64,000 nt of DNA from the IMG/VR virus record IMGVR_UViG_3300025121_000011, positions 271,170 to 335,169 of that record; one strand, given 5' to 3'. The notes under the pieces are model-generated. The model did no database searches, was not told the origin of the DNA, and saw only the letters and a list, made by a program, of their open reading frames with translations. A program made the translations under genes and the position numbers. Position 1 is the first letter of the stretch. The number at the start of each line of letters is the position of its first letter. Shown here one piece after another: positions 43,863-59,112 of the stretch.

Positions 43863-44288
43863 TTAAGAATCTTCTGAAACTATTTTCCTAGAATTGAATG
43901 TTCTTATTCTGTGGCAGTTAGCGCAAACTAATTCGCATTTTGAAATTTCGTTTGACAGTCTTGCTAAAGATACTCCTTTGTTTCGAGCAATACTAATATT
44001 AAATTCCTTATTTTTAAGGTGGTCAAAATCCATCACATAAGTTGGGTATGTGATACCACAATCAGTACATGGAGCGTCTTTTGCCTTTGCAATTACATCT
44101 AGTATAGATTGTTCTCTAATACTTTTCCTCTTTCGATAAGCATCTTTGTTAGATTGATAATGAGCTTTACTCATAATCTTATTGCACTCTCGACATCGAT
44201 TATGACGCTTGTTTAAAGATTTGTTTTCAAATGGGAAATCAGTAAGTAATAGGGTTTCGTGACATACATTACATTCTTTGGTAAGCAT
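43863..44288 (-). CDS. HNH homing-type endonuclease
   Basis: PCTDC...MDFDH...EISKCELVCANCHRIRT. Confidence 0.85.
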   Translation of the reverse strand: MLTKECNVCHETLLLTDFPFENKSLNKRHNRCRECNKIMSKAHYQSNKDAYRKRKSIREQSILDVIAKAKDAPCTDCGITYPTYVMDFDHLKNKEFNISIARNKGVSLARLSNEISKCELVCANCHRIRTFNSRKIVSEDS

Positions 44289-44341
44289 AAATCCTCCGTA
44301 TAATTTATGCTTATAAATTAGTAGATTCTTTAGTAAATTTT

Positions 44342-44418
44342 AGGGCCATAACTCAATTGGTTAGAGTGTCGCTCTCATAAAGCGAATGTTCTGAGTTCGA
44401 GTCTCAGTGGCCCTACCA
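44342..44418 (+). tRNA. tRNA(CAT): Ile2 (TilS substrate) or Met
   Basis: cloverleaf; TCGCT-ctCATaa-AGCGA; ends ACCA. Confidence 0.88.
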
Positions 44419-44597
44419 TTTTAATCTTAAATAATAAAGCCTTGTTGAGTCGCTAAAATCTGGGTTGGCTTCCCAGCTTCCCAGCTCCTCGCTCTGGAGT
44501 AGGTACGAGTCAAAGAGAATGCCTGCCCGGGTTTCCCCCGGCTGGGAGCCGGATTAAGTTCTCATAGTAGTGTGATGGTCCTATTCACTACATTCCT

Positions 44598-44662
44598 GGA
44601 ACAAATAGTTTAATTGGGAGAACATTGACGAAAGGTGTGGGTTCGAGTCCTGCTTTGATTTT
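44598..44662 (+). ncRNA. tRNA-like RNA lacking an anticodon arm (degenerate copy)
   Basis: D-loop-like segment and T arm GTGGG-TTCGAGT-CCTGC; paralogue of 44939. Confidence 0.4.
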
Positions 44663-44693
44663 TTATATTAATCTTAAAATCGCGAGGAGTAAT

Positions 44694-44906
44694 ATGACTG
44701 TATTTCTTGTTGTAAAAGATTACAATCGTGAGTGTCCAAAGGACATAATTATGTCAGCCTTTTATAATAAAGAGGATGCCAAGACTTTTATGAAAAATAC
44801 TTTTGAAGAGATATGTAATTGTCCTGATCGGCAGACTGATGAAGATGAATTGGGATGTTTCAGATGTTGCTTGTGGATTGGTATTGATTCGATAGAGGTA
44901 AAATAA
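44694..44906 (+). CDS. small hypothetical protein
   Basis: GAGGAG RBS. Confidence 0.55.
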   Translation: MTVFLVVKDYNRECPKDIIMSAFYNKEDAKTFMKNTFEEICNCPDRQTDEDELGCFRCCLWIGIDSIEVK

Positions 44907-44938
44907 CATAGTGATCATCCTATTCATTACATATTAAT

Positions 44939-45009
44939 GGGCCAAATAGTTCAAGTGGGAGAATATCGTCGCGAGAAGATGTAGGTTCAAATCCTACTTT
45001 GAGCCCCCA
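44939..45009 (+). ncRNA. tRNA-like RNA with a truncated anticodon arm
   Basis: GGGCCAAA/TTTGAGCCC acceptor; T arm GTAGG-TTCAAAT-CCTAC; CCA end. Confidence 0.55.
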
Positions 45010-45026
45010 ATTTCATATTCATAGTT

Positions 45027-45079
45027 TGGGTACATTCAGCATAAATTTTTTTTACCATATAAAAACAAATCGTACCCAG
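45027..45079 (+). ncRNA. stem-CAGCA motif RNA, copy a
   Basis: TGGGTAC att CAGCA...GTACCCA G. Confidence 0.55.
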
Positions 45080-45118
45080 TGATTTAATCCTGGCTTTTGC
45101 CATTTAATGAGGTGTTTA

Positions 45119-45334
45119 ATGTGGAAGAATATTTTGGTTATGCTAATGCTTATGGGTTGCCCTACTGTTGAATCAGTTTCTGATGATGCAGCAGTAGTGG
45201 ATGATGCAGTAGTAGTTGAGACTCCGGTAGTTCAGTCTGATGCAGCAGTTGATGCGACTGTTACTACTCCGGTAGTTGATGAAAATGATGTTACTGCTGA
45301 TGTTGTAGAAAATGTTCCAGTTGCAACTGAGTAA
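45119..45334 (+). CDS. small acidic Val/Asp-rich lipoprotein
   Basis: signal peptide with LMGC lipobox. Confidence 0.6.
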   Translation: MWKNILVMLMLMGCPTVESVSDDAAVVDDAVVVETPVVQSDAAVDATVTTPVVDENDVTADVVENVPVATE

Positions 45335-45499
45335 ATAGGGAATAGGCATCACGGTCGCCTTTAAGTACGCCGTCATAGGTAAGTTTAGTTTTGGGTTGAT
45401 AACTATATTTAAGCAAACCTTAAACAGTTCATAATTTTAAGAAGAGATTTCTTATTATTCACAAATGAATGAGCCAATGATTGTGTCAGTTGGCATCGG

Positions 45500-45583
45500 T
45501 GCGGAGTATACAAGTGGTCAAAGTAGAGGCGCTCATAACGCTTTGCTATAGCTTCATGGGTTCGAATCCCATTTCCGCTCCCA
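45500..45583 (+). tRNA. tRNA(CAT) with a long variable arm and 1:72 mismatch (Met/fMet/Ile2 unresolved)
   Basis: AGGCG-ctCATaa-CGCTT; T arm ATGGG-TTCGAAT-CCCAT; CCA end. Confidence 0.75.
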
Positions 45584-45845
45584 ATGCTTGCACGAATATA
45601 GGTTCCGGTCGAAACACCTACAAAGTTTCGTAAAATCCTGTGAGTTTAGCCATCTGTAACCAACCAGGTCGGGTCAGGATTAAGCAACCGCAAGCGGGTC
45701 ATGCTAATATATTCTCATAACCTTTAGAAGTAGGATCGGAAAGAAATCCGGTAGGCAAGGTCGACTTACCCTGGTAAACTTCTTAAAGTGCTGCACTGGA
45801 ATAAAAAGCATACAGTTGGGTGATTGTCCTAGTCCCAACATCTTT

Positions 45846-46081
45846 AAGCCTTAACAGTTGGAGTTCTGTTTTTCATGAGTAAGCAGTGTCGGAGATTTAA
45901 TTTATTAAATCAATGACTAGGCTGAAAGTCGCTTTGCTGAATTTGATGATGCTTGTGTCAAAAGTATCTGATCTGAAAGCTTCAGACTTGATTGAATGCG
46001 AAAGTCATGGTTCTTAATTGACACTCCCCATGACAGTTAGTAAATCCAAGAGACGGTTAGGTTCGAATCCTAGGAGGCTTA
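45846..46081 (+). ncRNA. large tRNA-like RNA (acceptor stem and T arm enclosing ~200 nt)
   Basis: AAGCCTT/GAGGCTT acceptor; TTAGG-TTCGAAT-CCTAG T arm. Confidence 0.45.
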
Positions 46082-46086
46082 TTATT

Positions 46087-46434
46087 ATGAAAAAGCAAAA
46101 GGGTTGGATTATTATTGGTTTAAAACGAAACGGAGATTATGTTGGTTACATTGAAAATTCTTTTTCAATGGGACGCAGTTTAGAACGGGTTTTAGTTTTT
46201 CGTCCAAATCCTCTTTCTGAAAAAGAACATCCAAATAAGAGTGCTGTAGATAATGCTCGTTCACATTTAGCAAAACTTCAGGCTCTTGATGACCACACTG
46301 AGTGGTGGTTGTATCGAGTTGGTTCTTGTACTTGTCCCGTCAAAATTGATTGGGGTTCTTTATACGAAGAATATCGAGGAAGTACAAGAGTAAGTAATTT
46401 TAACTGGAGAAATCTTAAATTCAGTCGGAAATAG
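46087..46434 (+). CDS. hypothetical protein
   Basis: AGGAGG RBS overlapping the 3' end of the tRNA-like element. Confidence 0.6.
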   Translation: MKKQKGWIIIGLKRNGDYVGYIENSFSMGRSLERVLVFRPNPLSEKEHPNKSAVDNARSHLAKLQALDDHTEWWLYRVGSCTCPVKIDWGSLYEEYRGSTRVSNFNWRNLKFSRK

Positions 46435-46709
46435 AAGTATATTATTTGTTACCTGAGGGGATTTAAATGTCTGTGCCGAATGTAATTCAAAAGGCTTTTG
46501 ATCTTGATGAGAGGATTATTGCCGTGGCTTGGGATAAGATTGAGCCAGTGCTGATTTTATCTAAACCATGGCTCGAAAGTGCCGAAGAGGAGATGGTTCA
46601 AGAAGAGTTTTTAAGGCAAAGTGAAACATATCTATTATTTGATGAACTATGGCGATTTTTTGAAGATTGTGAATCAACTAGATATGATAGAGAATAGTTT
46701 TTGTTTTGA

Positions 46710-46866
46710 TGCCATGTAGCAAAGTAGGTAAATGCAAGTGTGGACTAAGCCAATATGGATGGTCTTGTAATCGAGAGAACAAGTTCCGGGATCATGGTGA
46801 AACCCATTGTTATTATTTAGCCCGACGAATAATGACGCGCTGGTTCGAGTCCAGCCATGGCAACTA
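46710..46866 (+). ncRNA. tRNA-like RNA with ~100 nt in place of the anticodon and variable arms
   Basis: TGCCATG/CATGGCA acceptor; D arm; GCTGG-TTCGAGT-CCAGC T arm; ends ACTA. Confidence 0.6.
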
Positions 46867-46871
46867 TTTTT

Positions 46872-46988
46872 TGCGGAATAGTGTAGTAGGGAGCACGCGT
46901 ATAATGTATCTTGATAAAGATGTATACAGCAATCAAACAAATCCATTGGGTGGACGAAGTATAGGTTCGAGTCCTATTTCTGCAACTA
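46872..46988 (+). ncRNA. tRNA-like RNA carrying a permuted stem-CAGCAA motif in the anticodon arm
   Basis: TGCGGAA/TTCTGCA acceptor; GTGT/GCAC D stem; ATAGG-TTCGAGT-CCTAT T arm; insert GTATCTTG-ataa-AGATGTATACAGCAA. Confidence 0.65.
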
Positions 46989-47027
46989 TTTGAGAAGACA
47001 TAACACTTAACAAAAGGAGATAATTAA

Positions 47028-47279
47028 ATGAAGAATTTTATGATTATTTTGGCAGCACTGTTTGCTTTTGGATGTGCAGAATCTAAGGTGATTAATGGTG
47101 TGGAGTATGAGCCATGTGGATTGCTGGATGACTCAGACTGTAAGGATCCTTCTATTCGTTATGAAGCTAACATTGGAAATGTCATCTGGGGAGTTATTTT
47201 GGTTGAGACTGTGGTTGTTCCGATTTGGCTTTTTGGGTTTGAGCTTTATGAGCCAACTTATGCAAAGCCGATCAAGTAA
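47028..47279 (+). CDS. small lipoprotein/membrane protein
   Basis: AAAAGGAG RBS; FAFGC lipobox; transmembrane segment. Confidence 0.7.
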   Translation: MKNFMIILAALFAFGCAESKVINGVEYEPCGLLDDSDCKDPSIRYEANIGNVIWGVILVETVVVPIWLFGFELYEPTYAKPIK

Positions 47280-47355
47280 GTAAAAATAATATAAAAATCT
47301 TTTGATTATTTTTAAAACGTAGCGTATGCTAAATGTAGCAATCAATTAAATTTAT

Positions 47356-47434
47356 GCCTCTGTAGCTCAGGATTGAGAGTGCCTGGCGTTTCGCTGGGAG
47401 GGTCGTTAGGTTAAAGTCTTAACCGGAGGCACCA
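47356..47434 (+). ncRNA. atypical tRNA-like RNA (cgTTTcg loop)
   Basis: GCCTCTG/CGGAGGC acceptor; ends ACCA; non-canonical anticodon and T loops. Confidence 0.55.
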
Positions 47435-47534
47435 TACAGGTTTGAGGGGAACGCGAAGAGATAGTCCTTAACGTAAGTATTCTATCGTGAGATAGAGTAG
47501 CCTACTACAATCATTTTATATAGATGTCATTTAT

Positions 47535-47627
47535 ATTTGAATAGCTTAGTGTCAAAGCGTTTGCGGCCTACTTCTTCGGATTCAAAAGCCGTAAAAGTCA
47601 TAGGTTAGATTCCTATTTCAAATACTA
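47535..47627 (+). ncRNA. tRNA-like RNA with an enlarged anticodon arm
   Basis: ATTTGAA/TTCAAAT acceptor; TTTGCGGC...GCCGTAAA stem with a 20-nt loop; ends ACTA. Confidence 0.55.
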
Positions 47628-47716
47628 TTTAAACTATAGGTTCACGGAACACACTCTTTCACGGTGGTTACTCACTTTAAATTGAAATATTTTTAGGTCT
47701 ATAGTTTAAATTTTTA

Positions 47717-47838
47717 AGGGATGCAATCAGCAATTAAATTTTTCTTTATGTAAAAACAAATCGCACCCTGATTTTTTTAGGATACAAACAGCAAATAAAC
47801 ATTCAACTTGTTTTTGAAAAACGTTTAATTGTATCCTG
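47717..47838 (+). ncRNA. two tandem stem-CAGCAA motif RNAs, copies b and c
   Basis: AGGGATGC aat CAGCAA...GCACCCTG; AGGATACAA a CAGCAA...TTGTATCCTG. Confidence 0.6.
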
Positions 47839-47870
47839 TTTATTATTAGTAGTAGCATTAAGGTGATAAT

Positions 47871-48161
47871 ATGATTCAAGCTATGACTGTATTGACAGCA
47901 GAACCGCATCCTAATGCGGATAGATTAAAAGTCTATACTCTACGTGCAAGTTATGATGAGCCAATTCTTCAGGTGTGTGCTAATCTAACCAATGTTTATA
48001 GTGTTGGTAATGTTGTAGCTGTTTGTTTAATTGGTCATGCATATGATGGTATGGTTATCAAATCCCGGAAGGTGCGTGGGGTTCTGTCTCAAGGAATGAT
48101 GATTGGTACTACAAAGGCTGTTTCAGGTTCTGATGTTACTGATTCATTTGTGATTGTGTAA
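47871..48161 (+). CDS. tRNA-binding OB-fold protein (Trbp111/PheT N-terminal-like)
   Basis: PHPNADRL...QVC...N...G..VAV...KVRGVLSQGM. Confidence 0.8.
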   Translation: MIQAMTVLTAEPHPNADRLKVYTLRASYDEPILQVCANLTNVYSVGNVVAVCLIGHAYDGMVIKSRKVRGVLSQGMMIGTTKAVSGSDVTDSFVIV

Positions 48162-48213
48162 AATATATAATTTAAAGTAATCTTCTTATGAATATTGTTA
48201 ATTTGTTTTTGTT

Positions 48214-48267
48214 TGGGTGCAACCAGCAAACTAAATAATTCAGGCTACTATTCTAAATTGCACCCAG
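48214..48267 (+). ncRNA. stem-CAGCAA motif RNA, copy d
   Basis: TGGGTGCAA c CAGCAA...TTGCACCCA G. Confidence 0.6.
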
Positions 48268-48343
48268 CTTTTAATTTTTACTTATAAATATATAATCAGA
48301 AGTAACTATCCTATGAAATTAAAAACATACCAGGAGGTATGCC

Positions 48344-48952
48344 ATGTTAAGGATGGTTGGGCCCAAAATTCCTATGGATATTTATGTGGCGGCTTCTGGT
48401 GGACCAGACAGCATGGCTGTCTTGGATTTTCTTATTCGTGGTGGTCGTAAAATTACAGTTTTACATTTTGATCATGGGACTAAACATGGAGAAGATGCTA
48501 GAGAGTTTATTAGGGAGTATTGTCAGTCGAGAGATATTAAACTGATTATTGGAAATGAGATTAGAGAGCGAGACTCTAACGAGTCTATGGAAGAATATTG
48601 GCGTGATATGCGATATCAGTTTCTTGATCAGTATTCAGATAAGCCAATTGTCATGGCACATAATCTTGATGATCAGGTGATGAGTTGGGTATTTACTTCT
48701 TTGAATGGATTGCCAAAACTTATTCCTTATAACAGAAGGAACGTTATCCGTCCTTTCATTGTAACTTCTAAGCAGAATATGATTGATTGGTGTGAGCGAA
48801 ATGGGGTTCCGTATTTAACGGACCCAAGTAATGATGATACAAGATATATGAGAAATTTTATTAGAAAAGAAATTCTTCCTTCAGCTTTAGTTGTTAATCC
48901 AGGATTATATAAAGTAATCTTAAAGAAGATTTTAAGAAATTTTGAAGGATAA
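48344..48952 (+). CDS. tilS: tRNA(Ile)-lysidine synthetase (PP-loop domain only)
   Basis: SGGPDS, DHG, RY.F, AHNLDDQ, IRP, DPSN...RNFIR. Confidence 0.88.
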   Translation: MLRMVGPKIPMDIYVAASGGPDSMAVLDFLIRGGRKITVLHFDHGTKHGEDAREFIREYCQSRDIKLIIGNEIRERDSNESMEEYWRDMRYQFLDQYSDKPIVMAHNLDDQVMSWVFTSLNGLPKLIPYNRRNVIRPFIVTSKQNMIDWCERNGVPYLTDPSNDDTRYMRNFIRKEILPSALVVNPGLYKVILKKILRNFEG

Positions 48953-48964
48953 ATAATTATATTT

Positions 48965-49000
48965 TGGATATATGCAGCAATTAAATCACAAACTATCCAG
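48965..49000 (+). ncRNA. stem-CAGCAA motif, copy e, abutting the RBS of the DUF2828 gene
   Basis: TGGATA tatg CAGCAA...TATCCA G, then AGAGG and ATG 49013. Confidence 0.55.
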
Positions 49001-49012
49001 TAGAGGTGAAAT

Positions 49013-50464
49013 ATGAGTTTTGTAGACGCAATGACTTCTAATGATATGCTTACAGAAAATGGTGCCGTTACTCACAGCACCTCAGGAAAAGCAATTATGG
49101 ATATGTTTTTCCAGATCGGTGGTATGCGTGGCCATAGTGGTGAAGATGTAATTTCTTTATTTACTAAGGCTCTTGGAGAAGATCCTTTAACGGCAATGAA
49201 GATCTTGTTTTATAACCGCGATATTCGTGGTGGACAAGGAGAGCGGCAAACTTTTCGTTATATTATGTCTTATCTTGCTCAGTATCATCCGGAGCTTATT
49301 CGAAAGAATATGCATTTGATTCCGGAATACGGTCGGTGGGATGATATGTTTGTGTTTGTTGGAACCGGATTGGAGAATGATGCTTTTGCTTTAATTCGCA
49401 CTGCATTGCATGAGCAAAACGGTTTAGCCGCAAAGTGGTGTCCTCGTTTGAAGTCTTCTAAAAAGATTTTAGCAGCAAAACTGTGTGCATATCTTGGAAT
49501 GACTCCGAAGCAATATCGTCAAACGCTTGCGAGACTTACCAAGGTTGTTGAAACTCCAATGTGCGCTAATCAGTGGGAAGATATTAACTTTAGTCAGGTC
49601 CCTTCGGTAGCAATGAAAAATTATCGCAAGTCATTTGCGAGACATACTCCCAACGAGTGGGAACAGTATCTTGCTGCTTTAGAAAAGGGCGACCCGGCTG
49701 TTAAGATTAATGCAAGCGCTATTTTCCCACATGACATTATCAAACAGTGGGTTGCTGGTTCAGTCGGTTATTATAGGGTTACATCTCCAGATCGTCAAGA
49801 GATTCGCGCAGCCGAAGCACAGTGGAATGCTTTGCCTGATTATATGGGTGAGAATTCTGGAAAGGTATTGGTTATGGCCGATGTTTCGGGTTCTATGTAT
49901 TCTGGTTTAAATCCCAGTTTAGCTCCAATTCAGGCTTCCGTTTCTTTGGCGCTGTATTGTGCCGAACGATGTAAGGGGCCTTTTAAGAATTTTTACATGA
50001 GTTTTTCTGGAAATCCAGAATTTGTAAAGGTTCAAGGAAGTAATATTTACGAAAAAGTTATTAATATCAACAATAAAAATGTTGGATATAACACTGATAT
50101 TAATCGTGCTTTTGCGGTATTGTTGAGTCGCGCAAAGCAGCACTCTGTTTCACAGGCCGACATGCAAGAAACTTTATTGATTCTTTCAGATATGCAATTT
50201 GATTGCAGCGAAATTAGTGGAAAGACTAATTTTGAAACGATTCGAGATCAGTACCGTGCATCTGGTTATCAACTTCCTCAGATTGTTTTTTGGAATTTGA
50301 ATTCTAAGGGTGGTGTTCCGGTAAAAATAACTGATGATGGAGTAGCTTTAGTGTCCGGGTTTAGCCCAAGTATTCTTACTGCAATCCTGGGTGGAGAAGT
50401 ATCGCCCATGGCAGTTTTGAATAGGGCAATTCATAGTGGACGATATGATGCGGTAACTCTTTGA
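49013..50464 (+). CDS. DUF2828 family protein with C-terminal vWA domain (Ro60/TROVE-like architecture)
   Basis: TENG, RDIRGGQGER, YGRWDD, AAKWCPR; MIDAS DVSGSM; ILSDMQFD, IVFWNL, VSGFSP. Confidence 0.82.
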   Translation: MSFVDAMTSNDMLTENGAVTHSTSGKAIMDMFFQIGGMRGHSGEDVISLFTKALGEDPLTAMKILFYNRDIRGGQGERQTFRYIMSYLAQYHPELIRKNMHLIPEYGRWDDMFVFVGTGLENDAFALIRTALHEQNGLAAKWCPRLKSSKKILAAKLCAYLGMTPKQYRQTLARLTKVVETPMCANQWEDINFSQVPSVAMKNYRKSFARHTPNEWEQYLAALEKGDPAVKINASAIFPHDIIKQWVAGSVGYYRVTSPDRQEIRAAEAQWNALPDYMGENSGKVLVMADVSGSMYSGLNPSLAPIQASVSLALYCAERCKGPFKNFYMSFSGNPEFVKVQGSNIYEKVININNKNVGYNTDINRAFAVLLSRAKQHSVSQADMQETLLILSDMQFDCSEISGKTNFETIRDQYRASGYQLPQIVFWNLNSKGGVPVKITDDGVALVSGFSPSILTAILGGEVSPMAVLNRAIHSGRYDAVTL

Positions 50465-50495
50465 TAAGGGATTGATGTTTATTGAATAAGTTTTA

Positions 50496-50628
50496 AGGAT
50501 ACATTAACAGCAAAACAAAAGACTACATGATGCAATTAATTAGGTCTTCGGATCGGAATTAATATGAGTGGCGGCGGGAAGGCATGACGCCACTCATTAA
50601 AAAAATAAATAGATGTCTATGTATCCTG
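50496..50628 (+). ncRNA. stem-CAGCAA motif RNA, copy f, with an internal hairpin
   Basis: AGGATACAT taa CAGCAA...ATGTATCCT G, enclosing ATGAGTGGCG/CGCCACTCAT. Confidence 0.6.
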
Positions 50629-50656: not shown

Positions 50657-51292
50657 ATGCGAATTTGCACCTCAAATCCCGGCAAGGTATCTGAGTTTGG
50701 AGGGCTTCTCGCACCTCTAGATATTAACCTAGATGTGTCTGGAGATTACGATATTCCAGAAACCGGTATAACTTTTGCAGATAACTCGCGAGAAAAAATT
50801 CTGGGTTATGCCAAGCATTATTCTGGAGAATGGTTATTGGCAGATGATTCTGGATTAGTAATTCCAGCTTTAAATAATTTGCCAGGCCCATTTAGCGCGC
50901 GATTTAGTGATCTTGATCTTGATACGTTAATGATTGTATCAAGTGGAGATGATCGAGAAGTAATTGATTTAAAAAATAACAATCGTGTATTAGAGTTACT
51001 TAGTAATATTCCTCACGATAATCGTGGAGCTTACTTTGTGGCTTGTATTACTGTTTTAAATCCAGATGGAAAAGTTTCTTTCCAAGTAGAACGCAGAGCG
51101 TATGGTTATATTTCCAAAGAACTTCGTGGGAAAAATGGATTTGGATATGATCCTCTTTTCATTTCAGATAATAGCTTTGGCAAAACATGGGCAGAAATTG
51201 ATAAGGCTAGAAAGTCTTTAATCAGTCATCGATCTAAAGCTATTTGGGATTTCTTGGCTTGGATCTGCTCTACATCTGAGGTTATTTCATGA
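50657..51292 (+). CDS. rdgB: RdgB/HAM1 non-canonical purine NTP pyrophosphatase
   Basis: TSNPGK, DDSGL, PG..SAR, FGYDP, SHR motifs. Confidence 0.9.
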   Translation: MRICTSNPGKVSEFGGLLAPLDINLDVSGDYDIPETGITFADNSREKILGYAKHYSGEWLLADDSGLVIPALNNLPGPFSARFSDLDLDTLMIVSSGDDREVIDLKNNNRVLELLSNIPHDNRGAYFVACITVLNPDGKVSFQVERRAYGYISKELRGKNGFGYDPLFISDNSFGKTWAEIDKARKSLISHRSKAIWDFLAWICSTSEVIS

Positions 51293-51332
51293 GTATTCAG
51301 TTTACAATTAATGTCGTAGTAACTCGGTTTTA

Positions 51333-51917
51333 ATGATGGAATCAATACTTTTGCATTTTGATTCGGTTATAAATTCAATTAAGATTGGAATGCCAACAGG
51401 TAGGCTCCGTGTGCCAGATATAATTTCTGTGCTTGGCGTCGAACCACCTAAGAGAATTGGGCGTGAATTGTTTCTTGCAAGTGGGCGATTTGTTTATTTT
51501 TATTCTAGAACAAAAGTTTATCCACAAATGGTTGCCATGAATGATCTTGATGTGGCCTTTGTTGGGTCGGACGCCTTAGAGGCTGGTCCTTATGCTCAAC
51601 AGTGTAATGTTGTTTGGTCAGAGCTACAGCAAGGCGTAAGAGTAGTCCTGGCTGGCTCTACACAAATCTCTAAGGGTAAGCTGCTCCGAGTAGTTACCCC
51701 ATTTCCAGAATGGGCTCAGAAGGTCATTGGCGAGCTAGGAATTCCTCATACGATTTACGCAGTAACGGGCGGATCAGAGGGTTTGGTTGCTCATGGTTTG
51801 GCTGATGCCGTATTTGATATTGTTGAGACTGGAGAAACATTAAGAGATAATGGATTGGAAATTTTAATGGATTTCGGACAACTTCATACATGCTGTATTG
51901 TTAAGAGTAAGCCATGA
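51333..51917 (+). CDS. hisG: ATP phosphoribosyltransferase (short form, divergent)
   Basis: PTGRL, D.AFVG.D, G..E and ADAVFDIVETGETLRDNGL motifs. Confidence 0.8.
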   Translation: MMESILLHFDSVINSIKIGMPTGRLRVPDIISVLGVEPPKRIGRELFLASGRFVYFYSRTKVYPQMVAMNDLDVAFVGSDALEAGPYAQQCNVVWSELQQGVRVVLAGSTQISKGKLLRVVTPFPEWAQKVIGELGIPHTIYAVTGGSEGLVAHGLADAVFDIVETGETLRDNGLEILMDFGQLHTCCIVKSKP

Positions 51918-52798
51918 TTGAACTAGATTCTATGACGATGGATACATTTCGCCAACAACCATTAGTAGTAGAAGGTGAAAGCAAAGAAATTAGAGAGCAT
52001 CCAGAAGATCCAGAAAAAGTATTAATTTGGTTAAAGCCCACAATCTATAGCTTCACAGAAAATCGTTGTGCTTGGGTCGAAGGATCAAATCTTTTGAGAG
52101 CAAGAGCTATGAAAATCATTGTTCCTTTATTGCAAAGTAAAGGAATAGATCATGCTTATCAAGATATTTCCGATGTAACTGGTTTGATTTCGGCCAGAAA
52201 AATCCATCCGTCAGAAGACCCAAATGTAGAGGTAATCGTAAAGAGATTTAATAGTGGCACATCTTATCATCGTTATTATGGAATGGCGGCTAAGCCAACG
52301 AGGGGATCTCATAAGTTATGGCCCGGGGAAGTTGTTGGAAAGTATGAGCCATATCGTGGACCAAAGATTAGGTTTGACTGGAGGAATCCATTCTGGATTC
52401 CAGAATTAGTAATGAAGCTTCGTAAGACTAATCCGTTACTTCCAGCGGAAGTTTATAAGTGGCCTGATGAATTGCGTCAAGGCATTATGATGCGTGATGA
52501 AGTCTTGGGAGAGGATTTTGCTTCCGAGCTAATTGATACAAAGCAAGCTAGGAAAACTGCTCTATGGACATATGCAGTTTTACAAAATTATATGGGTGAA
52601 AGAAATATCGTTATATATGATATGTGTTTGTTTATTACATCAGATGGTAAAACTGTATATGGTGAAATCAATCAAGACTCTGGACGATTTAGACATTTAG
52701 ATTATGGAATGTTGGATAAGGATGTCTGGAGAGCAGGAGGCTCCATTGGAGATGTTTTAGAAAAATGGCAGATGCTAACTGTTATGTTACAAGAATAA
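51914..52798 (+). CDS. purC: SAICAR synthetase (PurC)-like protein, divergent
   Basis: EGESKEI, VEVIVK...GT, GEINQDSGR, LDKDVWR. Confidence 0.65.
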   Translation: MIELDSMTMDTFRQQPLVVEGESKEIREHPEDPEKVLIWLKPTIYSFTENRCAWVEGSNLLRARAMKIIVPLLQSKGIDHAYQDISDVTGLISARKIHPSEDPNVEVIVKRFNSGTSYHRYYGMAAKPTRGSHKLWPGEVVGKYEPYRGPKIRFDWRNPFWIPELVMKLRKTNPLLPAEVYKWPDELRQGIMMRDEVLGEDFASELIDTKQARKTALWTYAVLQNYMGERNIVIYDMCLFITSDGKTVYGEINQDSGRFRHLDYGMLDKDVWRAGGSIGDVLEKWQMLTVMLQE

Positions 52799-52818
52799 TG
52801 ACAGAAGGTTTGTGAAAT

Positions 52819-54066
52819 ATGATTATACCAAGTATTGATATTCAGGGCGGCAAAGTAGTTCAGCTTATTGAGGGCAGGGAGTTAGCATTAACTGTAGATG
52901 TTCCATACGCTTTAGCTGAAAAGTTTTCTCGCGTTGGAGAGTTTGCTGTTATAGATTTAGACGCTGCTATGGGTTTGGGTAATAATCGAGAGATTGTAGA
53001 ATCTTTAGTAAGAAAATATCCAGTTAGAGTTGGTGGTGGTATTAGGAATATATCAGATGCATTATATTGGTTAAATGCCGGGGCGTCAAAGATTATTATT
53101 GGAACCGCCGCTGTTCCAAATTTTATTTCACAACTTCCTCGTGATCGAATTATTGTAGCTTTAGATTCTTATAATGACGATGTTGTTATAAATGGTTGGA
53201 CTACAAGAACTGGACGTAATGTTGCCCAAGCTATGCAAGATGTTTTACCATATACATCTGGATTCTTAATTACTTTTGTAGAGAAAGAAGGAAGGTTAGA
53301 TGGCACAAACTTAGACAGGACTAAGTTTTTAGTTGATGCCGCAAATGGTGCGCGCATCACTTTTGCAGGAGGAATTACAACTGCTAATGATATAGCATAT
53401 CTAGATTCTATTGGTGCCGATTCGCAGGTCGGAATGGCTCTTTACACTGGAAAGCTTTTATTATCGGAAGGGTTCGCTTCTGTTTTGAAAAGTGATCGAA
53501 GCGATGGACTTTGGCCAACAGTTGTTCAAGATGAATCTGGAGTATTAGGTTTAGTATATTCAAATCAAGAAAGTCTTCATACATCAATTGAATCTGGTGA
53601 AGGTGTATATTGGTCAAGAAGAACCGGTTTATGGAAGAAGGGAAACTTTTCTGGCAATACACAATCAATAGTAAATATTAAAGTAGATTGTGATCGAGAT
53701 GCTTTGCTTTTTACAGTAAAGCAGCATGGTGAGGGATTCTGTCATACCGGTTCTTATCAATGTTTTAATTCAATGGATGCACTATTTGAACTTGAACAAA
53801 CATTAGAGCGCAAGAAACATTCTAATGATTTAGAATCTTATACATATAACTTATTTGAGCAATCAAATATCTTAAGAAATAAGATCATGGAAGAGGCGGC
53901 TGAATTATGTGACGCCCATAGTAATAGTGAGGTTATTCATGAGGCGGCAGATCTGATATATTTTATGATGACTTATCTTTCTTTACATGATGTAACTTTA
54001 GCTGATATTAAGAAAGAAATTAAACGTCGGTCATTAGTGATTGCAAGAAGGAAAAGTAAAGAGTGA
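52819..54066 (+). CDS. hisA: HisA-HisI-HisE fusion (ProFAR isomerase, PR-AMP cyclohydrolase, PR-ATP pyrophosphatase)
   Basis: IIPSIDIQGGKVVQL, VGGGIR; YWSRR...DCDRDALL...CHTG...C; KIMEEAAE...EAADL. Confidence 0.85.
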   Translation: MIIPSIDIQGGKVVQLIEGRELALTVDVPYALAEKFSRVGEFAVIDLDAAMGLGNNREIVESLVRKYPVRVGGGIRNISDALYWLNAGASKIIIGTAAVPNFISQLPRDRIIVALDSYNDDVVINGWTTRTGRNVAQAMQDVLPYTSGFLITFVEKEGRLDGTNLDRTKFLVDAANGARITFAGGITTANDIAYLDSIGADSQVGMALYTGKLLLSEGFASVLKSDRSDGLWPTVVQDESGVLGLVYSNQESLHTSIESGEGVYWSRRTGLWKKGNFSGNTQSIVNIKVDCDRDALLFTVKQHGEGFCHTGSYQCFNSMDALFELEQTLERKKHSNDLESYTYNLFEQSNILRNKIMEEAAELCDAHSNSEVIHEAADLIYFMMTYLSLHDVTLADIKKEIKRRSLVIARRKSKE

Positions 54067-59049: not shown

Positions 59050-59112
59050 GGATGTTAACAGCAAGTTAAAAACTCTTTGATTCATTCTCAAAATAAGTAA
59101 ATATACATCCTG
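59050..59112 (+). ncRNA. stem-CAGCAA motif RNA, copy g, just 5' of tRNA-Glu
   Basis: GGATGT taa CAGCAA...ACATCC TG. Confidence 0.55.

Follow-up and report, generated by a model that had tools for sequence, protein, structure and literature searches.

We analysed a 64,000-nucleotide stretch of DNA (the window) from the 335-kb jumbo-phage record IMGVR_UViG_3300025121_000011, with which groundwater and soil metagenomes are listed as DNA runs. Positions 46872–46988 of the window, on the plus strand, hold a tRNA-like element whose anticodon arm is interrupted by a small RNA module, a hairpin followed by CAGCAA. Further copies of the module occur nearby, and the genes close to them encode a protein with a tRNA-binding domain (47871), a TilS-like PP-loop ATPase (48344) and a protein made up of the Pfam families DUF2828 and DUF7788 (49013–50464). 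Element positions are window coordinates throughout, and L-numbers (L015, L139, L285 and so on) denote loci from relatives.

The Rfam tRNA model (RF00005) matched positions 46872–46985 on the plus strand over model positions 1–71, scoring 40.8 bits against a gathering threshold of 29, with 11 anticodon-arm positions of the model replaced by 53 nt; ARAGORN made no tRNA call at 46872–46988. The acceptor stem has 7 bp, pairing UGCGGAA (46872–78) with UUCUGCA (46978–84), and is followed in the sequence by a discriminator A (46985) and CUA (46986–88). U8 and A9 precede a D arm, GUGU-AGUAGGGA-GCAC (46881–46896), that contains G18G19, and the T arm, AUAGG-UUCGAGU-CCUAU, lies at 46961–46977. Between the D and T arms we observed, in order, G26, CG, the linker UAUAAUG, the module hairpin, UAUA, CAGCAA, an A-rich linker and UCC-AUUGGGU-GGACG. 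The module hairpin, UAUCUU(46907–12)-GAUA-AAGAUG(46917–22), is a local, permuted form of the closing stem described below, and CAGCAA (46927–46932) lies 4 nt 3′ of it. Since CG (46898–99) and UCC (46942–44) can together pair with GGACG (46952–56), the 42-nt insert at 46900–46941, running from the first linker to the end of the A-rich linker, interrupts the 5′ strand of an anticodon arm that is canonical in other respects. What is left of that arm is a hairpin at 46942–46956 whose closing C-G and G-C pairs use 46898–99; without the insert it has a 5-bp stem and a 7-nt loop, AUUGGGU, with U33, the triplet UGG and G37. The stem is not contiguous, and it can be drawn only by skipping 46900–46941.

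The first-pass annotation of this DNA had described intact acceptor, D and T arms, an ACTA rather than an ACCA ending, and an insert of about 55 nt serving as the anticodon arm. The Rfam match and the helices read from the sequence agree with it on the arms, the ending is confirmed at 46985–88, and the motif string that it quoted is located at 46906–46932. Its account of the insert holds insofar as 53 nt replace 11 model positions, but the insert is better described as 42 nt in the 5′ strand, with a canonical-looking arm drawable around it. The ACUA ending of the element compares with an encoded NCCA in 8/8 canonical tRNAs called by ARAGORN in the window, and an ACUAUUU tail is common to the element and to two neighbouring tRNA-like sequences (46711–46868 and 47535–47627). 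A minimum free energy fold of the element alone was unremarkable (z −1.2) and paired CAGC with GCG of the anticodon stem; this pairing is not conserved in the family described below, and we discarded it. Pairing of the first linker with sequence after CAGCAA (GUAUA/UAUAC, GUAAA/UUUAC, GUAG/CUAC) is possible in some family members only, and in the window the partner lies before CAGCAA. A megablast search of 44000–50500 against INPHARED phages returned no match.

We scanned IMG/VR with a pattern for the hairpin form, ATCCTG-N-AGGAT-N-CAGCAA, and obtained 14 tRNA-like elements with the layout of the window element, which we call type i: acceptor, D arm, a linker such as ACGUAUAAAAGGUU, AUCC-UGNNA-AGGAU, a 4–5-nt spacer, CAGCAA, a second linker, the residual anticodon hairpin, T arm and acceptor. 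A covariance model (R1) built from 12 of the 14, with the window left out, scored the window element at 69.5 bits (E about 2e-17) over its full length, covering all 121 positions; the best score of R1 on canonical window tRNAs was 30.8 bits. We then scanned with the variant present in the window (ATCTTG...AAGAT...CAGCAA) and recovered a clade with AUCU/AGAU and other stems. CCA is encoded in none of L285, L298, L342, L344 and L382, whose elements end in AUUA, ACUU, UUUA, AUCA and similar sequences; in the GGAU clade, 12/14 members encode NCCA. The relatives in the AUCU clade share with the window copy both an A-U in place of G-C at stem position −9 and the absence of CCA, indicating that the two deviations of the window copy are clade features. 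Nearest to it are L285b, L285c and L298, with the linker CGUAAAAUAU-AUCUUG where the window has CGUAUAAUGU-AUCUUG; the residual loop is AUUGGGG in L285b, compared to AUUGGGU in the window.

The structure of the family is conserved. The position and content of the insert are kept in 26 relatives, and CAGCAA is present in 26/27 family members. In the 27-sequence alignment, RNAalifold predicted 22 pairs, 19 of them with compensatory changes, distributed over the acceptor stem (7/7), the T stem (4/5), the D stem (3/4) and the module hairpin (5/6). One pair of the module hairpin is UA in 13 sequences and CG in 12, and the variants ACCUU/AAGGU and AAUCU/AGAUU also occur; the outer pairs of the residual anticodon hairpin covary by eye (CGU/ACG, GCUU/AAGU, CUA/UAG). 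No family member departs from U8 or from the core T-loop positions, and A14 and G18 are nearly invariant, which argues for a tRNA-type elbow.

The module recurs in the window apart from the element. The sequence CAGCAAWYWAA occurs five times on the plus strand within 46927–48985, as compared with 0.71 occurrences expected in the whole window. In the copies outside the element, the 5′ strand of a stem stands in front of CAGCAA, and the complementary strand follows 13–100 nt later and is itself followed by G or UG. At least six other window RNAs, all on the plus strand, are closed by such a long-range stem in the same register as the hairpin of the element: module C (47717–47770; AGGGAUGC...GCACCCU-G), module D (47779–47839; AGGAUACAA-A-CAGCAA...UUGUAUCCU-GU, with strands GGAUACAA / UUGUAUCC), module E (48214–48267; UGGGUGCAA-C-CAGCAA...UUGCACCCA, with strands GGGUGCAA / UUGCACCC), module F (48965–49000), which lies in the leader of the DUF2828 mRNA and whose 3′ strand abuts the ribosome-binding site of the 49013 gene, module G (50496–50628), which lies just 3′ of the DUF2828 gene and encloses a structured cargo of ~100 nt (fold z −4.8), and module H (59050–59112), which ends ACAUCC-UG 4 nt before a tRNA-Glu gene. 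We aligned 39 long-range modules, 35 from leaders and 4 from the window. CAGCAA is invariant in all of them, and 97.7% of the cells of the 7-bp closing stem are paired, in comparison with 29–57% when the partner strand is slid by 1–3 columns. Five of the 7 pairs changed on both sides (AGAAUGU/ACAUUCU, AGGUUAU/AUAACCU, AGAAUGC/GCAUUCU, GGAUAC/GUAUCC), and this covariation rules out a purely DNA-level signal.

No Rfam family matched the long-range modules. The bare 11-mer GTATACAGCAA, searched with 2 mismatches, was found 18 times as compared with 18.2 expected, and we rejected it as a signal; the signal is CAGCAA in register with the stem. A strict scan for 7/7 closing-stem pairs was noisy and missed most tRNA-bearing modules, so we used targeted scans instead. 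Counts from a promoter and terminator consensus scan were not above those in shuffled sequences. We also observed, at L003:5680–5700, L012:960–980 and in many relatives, a local hairpin that abuts CAGCAA (UAGUCAU-AGG-AUGACUA; UGAUCAU/AUGAUCA in L012). This hairpin overlaps the 5′ strand of the long-range stem, so that the two are mutually exclusive and may constitute a folding switch.

The relatives also contain elements with the type-i parts in the same cyclic order but the opposite topology: the RNA begins and ends in the module stem, and a loop closes the acceptor. The element at L139:3084–3200, for example, reads 5′ to 3′ GGAUAC-UAA-CAGCAA, a linker, UCGA-CUGCAAA-UCGA, a variable region, the T arm, UUUACGC-UUCG-GCGUGAA, UA, the D arm, a linker and GUAUCC-UGUU. 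We rotated 13 such elements in silico at the acceptor loop, and each then aligned in a single piece to a profile hidden Markov model (HMM) of type i, starting at HMM positions 4–30 and ending at about 108, with 19–30 bits. By contrast, in native order the alignment breaks into two swapped pieces, with HMM positions 49–109 at the start of the sequence and 4–45 at its end. Both forms keep the module in one register: the stem runs from −10 to −4/−5 relative to CAGCAA, −6 is a U, and the 3′ strand is followed by UG. In type i, the whole stem precedes CAGCAA and has a 4-nt loop. In some members with the opposite topology (L015:602–718, L039, L163:1479), the acceptor hairpin is only 4–5 bp by eye. 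The circular permutation that the first-pass annotation had proposed is thus substantiated by the shared register and by the one-piece alignment after rotation, and its comparison with YrlA, a bacterial Y RNA, is upheld by relatives such as L139:3084–3200.

We collected ~160 loci that encode relatives of the 49013 protein, with 84 distinct sequences for the leader count. Relatives with 43–45% identity, which are common in freshwater samples of IMG, sit at the ends of arrays of 20–35 tRNA genes. In 80/84 distinct sequences, the 110 nt before the DUF2828 start codon contain a module, and the 3′ strand of this leader module runs into the ribosome-binding site (...ACAUUCU-G-U-AAAGG...AUG). In a clade with 37–39% identity, type-i copies start ~140–300 nt 3′ of the DUF2828 stop codon and are interleaved with simple modules; we found three copies with R1 and one more by eye in L285, three in L344, and one each in L342 and L298. 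A near-consensus TTGACA-17-TATAAT pair, identified by eye, precedes the cluster after DUF2828 in L285 (9930–9958). In a third clade, with 25–28% identity (L186, L274, L352), tandem repeats of 53–76 nt each contain the hairpin form GUAUCC-UGUAU-AGGAUAC-AUC-CAGCAA; they are divergent to the DUF2828 gene and ~100–200 nt away from it (L186:13793–14014, L274:44–170, L352:1–94). L186 and L352 are labelled GVMAG (giant-virus metagenome-assembled genomes). In L015, the genes after DUF2828 encode a protein tyrosine phosphatase (PTP)-like phosphatase, a calcineurin-like phosphoesterase (Metallophos), an AAA_33 kinase and an AAA ATPase, a set that resembles RNA end-healing enzymes. As a separate observation, ARAGORN called a transfer-messenger RNA at L285:7950–8243, just upstream of the DUF2828 promoter region.

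DUF2828 and DUF7788 were the sole Pfam matches of the 49013 protein at E ≤0.01. An AlphaFold2 model of the protein had a mean predicted local distance difference test score of 76 and a predicted template-modelling score of 0.68. With this model as the Foldseek query, the top 13 matches were all Ro60/TROVE structures aligned over about the full length, with a best E of 8e-9. Consistent with this, VIA-align superimposed residues ~26–482 on Ro60 structures (9kop, 9l5y, 1yvr, 2nvo, 9nen) at Z 12.9–18.8, with values of 18.8 and 17.4 for Ro60 of Thermus phage phiLo, 14.1–14.7 for Xenopus and human Ro60 and 12.9 for Deinococcus Rsr; structures with only a von Willebrand factor A (vWA) domain reached Z ≤10.3. 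The protein is hence predicted to adopt a Ro60 fold, with a helical-repeat ring followed by a vWA domain with a MIDAS (metal-ion-dependent adhesion site) motif of the form DxSxS, whose residues D290, S292 and S294 are invariant in the protein family. DUF2828 has been mentioned in papers on plants and a tardigrade, and viruses have it as well; a literature search found no report on DUF2828 in phages, on RNA partners of DUF2828 or on permuted tRNAs in phages.

On the basis of these data, we favour a reading in which the element is a Y-RNA-like, non-coding tRNA mimic bound by the Ro60-like DUF2828 protein, and we give it a probability of roughly 60%. The link between the motif and DUF2828 had been drawn in the first-pass annotation, and it has gained from the match of the protein model to Ro60/TROVE structures, from the leader module in 80/84 sequences and from the type-i clusters 3′ of the gene in another clade. 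The element would probably be transcribed together with its tandem neighbour at 46711–46868, and tRNA-processing enzymes would mature it: RNase P would probably form the 5′ end, and RNase Z or exonucleases would probably form the 3′ end after the discriminator A, a route that we propose because CCA is not encoded. The covariation supports a fold in which an L-shaped tRNA body bears a side module, projecting from the 5′ strand of the anticodon stem and consisting of a 6-bp hairpin, a 4-nt spacer and single-stranded CAGCAA. The DUF2828/DUF7788 protein, whose gene lies 2 kb downstream, would use this module as its binding platform, and the same platform would be formed by long-range 5′/3′ pairing in the at least six other small window RNAs that it closes. 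The module in the DUF2828 mRNA leader, beside the ribosome-binding site, suggests autoregulation. In what is the weakest step of the scheme, the tRNA body might have the tether or decoy function that has been proposed for YrlA. In this phage, with its large tRNA arrays, the body may recruit damaged tRNAs or enzymes that recognise tRNAs to the ring, and the system might serve tRNA surveillance or repair.

Several observations weigh against this reading. The window copy lies 2.0 kb, or three genes, upstream of the DUF2828 gene. CAGCAA is missing from the leader of the closest protein relative (L083, 64% identity), whose short contig also lacks a type-i copy and is of no use for orthology, and a leader hairpin at L083:1270–1300, GGAU(U)AC-CAU-GUAUCC, may be a remnant of the module. 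Pfam TROVE gave no match in the 49013 protein, and a profile of 18 homologues reached a TROVE chain among PDB sequences only at E 0.087; the canonical Ro motif of the RNA is not conserved. No RNA run is listed with the stretch, and three metatranscriptomes of the same study yielded zero reads. Judged by its sequence, the window copy is A-U where GGAU-type modules have an invariant G-C. The tRNA features of the family also count on this side. Without 46900–46941, the window element has a CGUCC/GGACG arm with the loop AUUGGGU, U33, UGG, G37 and A73; relatives leave canonical loops with fitting discriminators (AUGUCAA (GUC) with G73, AUGAUAA (GAU) with A73; also AUUCUAA); and one clade, GGAU, encodes NCCA in 12/14 members. 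Canonical loops together with encoded CCA look like selection for real tRNA features, as expected of an interrupted tRNA gene, here resembling tRNA-Pro(UGG), in which the module is an intron-like insert that is excised or tolerated. Its product would decode, and the module, perhaps with DUF2828, would serve processing rather than a stable ribonucleoprotein; the opposite topology, moreover, recalls the permuted tRNA genes of some algae. We nevertheless consider such a gene, the main alternative, unlikely. We know of no bacterial or phage mechanism for removing an insert of 42–53 nt at nucleotides 28/29. By eye, the junctions 46899/46900 and 46941/46942 allow no bulge-helix-bulge, and Rfam gave no match to a group I or other intron family; the insert is too short for group I. 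Conservation within the molecule is highest in the insert (CAGCAA in 26/27), and the loci also contain canonical tRNAs of matching anticodon (Asp-GUC in L237 and L163, Ile-GAU in L170, Ser-GCU in L069 and L227, and Pro-UGG and Cys-GCA in L285). Residual loops can be non-standard by eye, with 8 nt in L015, L177, L234, L241 and L259 and 9 nt in L344c; several permuted copies with acceptor hairpins of 4–5 bp and no discriminator or CCA could not yield a tRNA; and the module is also present without any tRNA, in mRNA leaders and tandem repeats.

The module might also be a real RNA read by a factor other than DUF2828, such as a processing nuclease or the tRNA_bind protein at 47871, or act as a folding insulator between the tRNAs of long precursors, and its linkage to DUF2828 would then reflect only shared residence in tRNA arrays. 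Modules do fill inter-tRNA spacers, where they begin just past CCA and finish in UGUUUU ahead of the following tRNA. Taken with its conserved preceding T (TAGRWT), the 5′ strand looks like a −10 hexamer, and among 79 relatives only 3 loci have type-i copies no farther than 6 kb from DUF2828. Shared residence is nonetheless improbable as an explanation, given that the leader module keeps a fixed distance from the DUF2828 ribosome-binding site in 80/84 loci, that the RNA cluster of the AUCU clade lies directly 3′ of the gene with its own promoter-like TTGACA-TATAAT pair (by eye), and that the motif stays beside DUF2828 genes of 25–28% identity, outside tRNA arrays. The window copy itself could be a functionless, decaying tRNA pseudogene that acquired a repeated, possibly mobile, intergenic element. 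It is one pair off the GGAU consensus, lacks CCA and is the sole type-i copy in the 64-kb window, and the only other assembly of the phage (L082) is identical, so that it offers no variation by which to judge conservation within the lineage. We regard decay as very improbable: both deviations are clade features of functional-looking relatives beside DUF2828, all helices are intact, U8, A14, G18G19 and the T loop are kept, and R1 scores 69.5 bits over the full length.

The surroundings of the element contain further tRNA-like sequences. A tandem tRNA-like sequence at 46711–46868, on the plus strand, ends 4 nt upstream of the element and is likely its co-transcript. It has the acceptor UGCCAUG/CAUGGCA, the T arm GCUGG-UUCGAGU-CCAGC and an insert of ~105 nt that lacks CAGCAA, ends A-CUAUUUU and scores 22 bits with R1. 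On the other side, the sequence at 47535–47627 (plus strand) scores 49.1 bits in Rfam and has an anticodon stem of 8 bp and a 20-nt loop with a UUCG mini-hairpin. A cloverleaf ending ACCA at 47356–47434 (plus strand), with a 7-bp stem and UUU triloop for an anticodon arm, was called by neither Rfam nor ARAGORN, and a degenerate motif, GUAGCAAUCAAUUAAAU, lies just upstream of it at 47334–50. Two more tRNA-like sequences on the plus strand, at 44599–44661 and 44940–45005 (37.3 and 32.1 bits in Rfam), have 4 or 7 nt in place of an anticodon arm; each is preceded by a similar box of ~30 nt, and each is followed by a small open reading frame (ORF). Within the tRNA cluster, the stretches 44420–44598 (GC-rich) and 45584–46086 are poor in ORFs, and the latter ends in a T-arm-like sequence, GGTTCGAATCC, at about 46060, directly before the ribosome-binding site of the ORF at 46087; both stretches may be further structured RNAs. 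Beyond the DUF2828 gene, 50657–54066 encodes Ham1 (inosine triphosphatase) and then a histidine-biosynthesis run comprising a HisG-like protein, a weakly SAICAR-synthetase-like protein and a HisA/F-HisIE fusion.

If the element is a Y-RNA-like partner of the DUF2828 protein, this family of proteins gains its first functional handle, as an RNA-binding ring of Ro60 type whose RNA site is defined, and the Ro/Y-RNA principle takes in a protein branch and an RNA motif that are both new. The system would also connect with two features of jumbo phages, their large tRNA arrays and their genes for RNA healing, and hence with the contest between phage and host over tRNA integrity. One module on the same tRNA scaffold in two permuted topologies would be a natural experiment, in which the three-dimensional arrangement matters and strand connectivity does not. 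A broader proposal, which we put forward tentatively and hold to be rather doubtful, is that DUF2828 is a second, sequence-divergent branch of Ro60 with its own modular Y-like RNAs in jumbo phages and giant-virus-labelled contigs; one class of these RNAs would be whole tRNA bodies tagged with the handle, which in some clades encode CCA and keep canonical anticodon loops for several specificities; such RNAs might be chargeable or recognised by anticodon nucleases, and the ring might guard, repair or provide decoys for the phage tRNA supply.

The element shares with canonical tRNA (RF00005) the acceptor, D and T arms, the nucleotides of tertiary interactions, the discriminator and a residual anticodon stem-loop. 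It differs in its conserved insert of 42–53 nt, in not encoding CCA, in receiving no ARAGORN call and in the redundancy of its relatives with canonical tRNAs. Intron-containing and circularly permuted tRNA genes occur in archaea and in red and green algae, where they are matured by bulge-helix-bulge splicing. Like these genes, the present family offers interrupted and permuted arrangements of one tRNA body, with the break at the same place; unlike them, it has no bulge-helix-bulge, belongs to a bacterial-type phage, has a conserved intervening part that is also found without a tRNA and includes many permuted copies that cannot give a tRNA. The topic of interrupted and permuted tRNA genes is reviewed in PMC4090602.

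YrlA RNAs are encoded beside Ro60 in bacteria and phages and carry a GNCGAAN0-1G motif, and Ro60 contacts mainly their 5′ strand (PMC4201824, Chen et al. 2014); Ro60 of Thermus phage phiLo binds two upstream Y-like RNAs with a CGAA motif (PMC12135203); and jumbo-phage TROVE proteins with a tRNA-like partner have been noted as part of RNA repair (PMC7824862). At the level of the sequence models, the Rfam YrlA family (RF02553) had no match at E ≤1 in 44000–48200, and relatives scored 29–31 bits against a gathering threshold of 69. We rejected GACGAAG (46953–59) as a YrlA-type Ro site, as it is not conserved in the family alignment. In both YrlA and the present RNAs, a tRNA-like domain that has D and T arms connects, at the anticodon-stem position, to a protein-binding stem (here a putative one), and the loci are alike in that the RNAs, several per locus, lie beside a ring-plus-vWA gene. 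The relatives with the opposite topology have the exact YrlA layout, with ends in the stem and a loop-closed acceptor (PMC4201824). By contrast, the ends of the window element form a 7-bp acceptor stem and its platform is a local hairpin, whereas the ends of YrlA pair in the protein-binding stem. The partner of YrlA is a Pfam TROVE protein, and here it would be DUF2828/DUF7788; the YrlA motif is GNCGAAN0-1G, CGAA or GGUCCGA, and here it is a stem with CAGCAA whose 3′ strand is followed by UG. The present system further differs from YrlA in that the mRNA leader of the protein itself contains a copy of the module. The present system therefore differs from its precedents in its RNA motif, in the Pfam family that marks its protein branch and in its acceptor-ended topology, on a layout that its permuted relatives share with YrlA.

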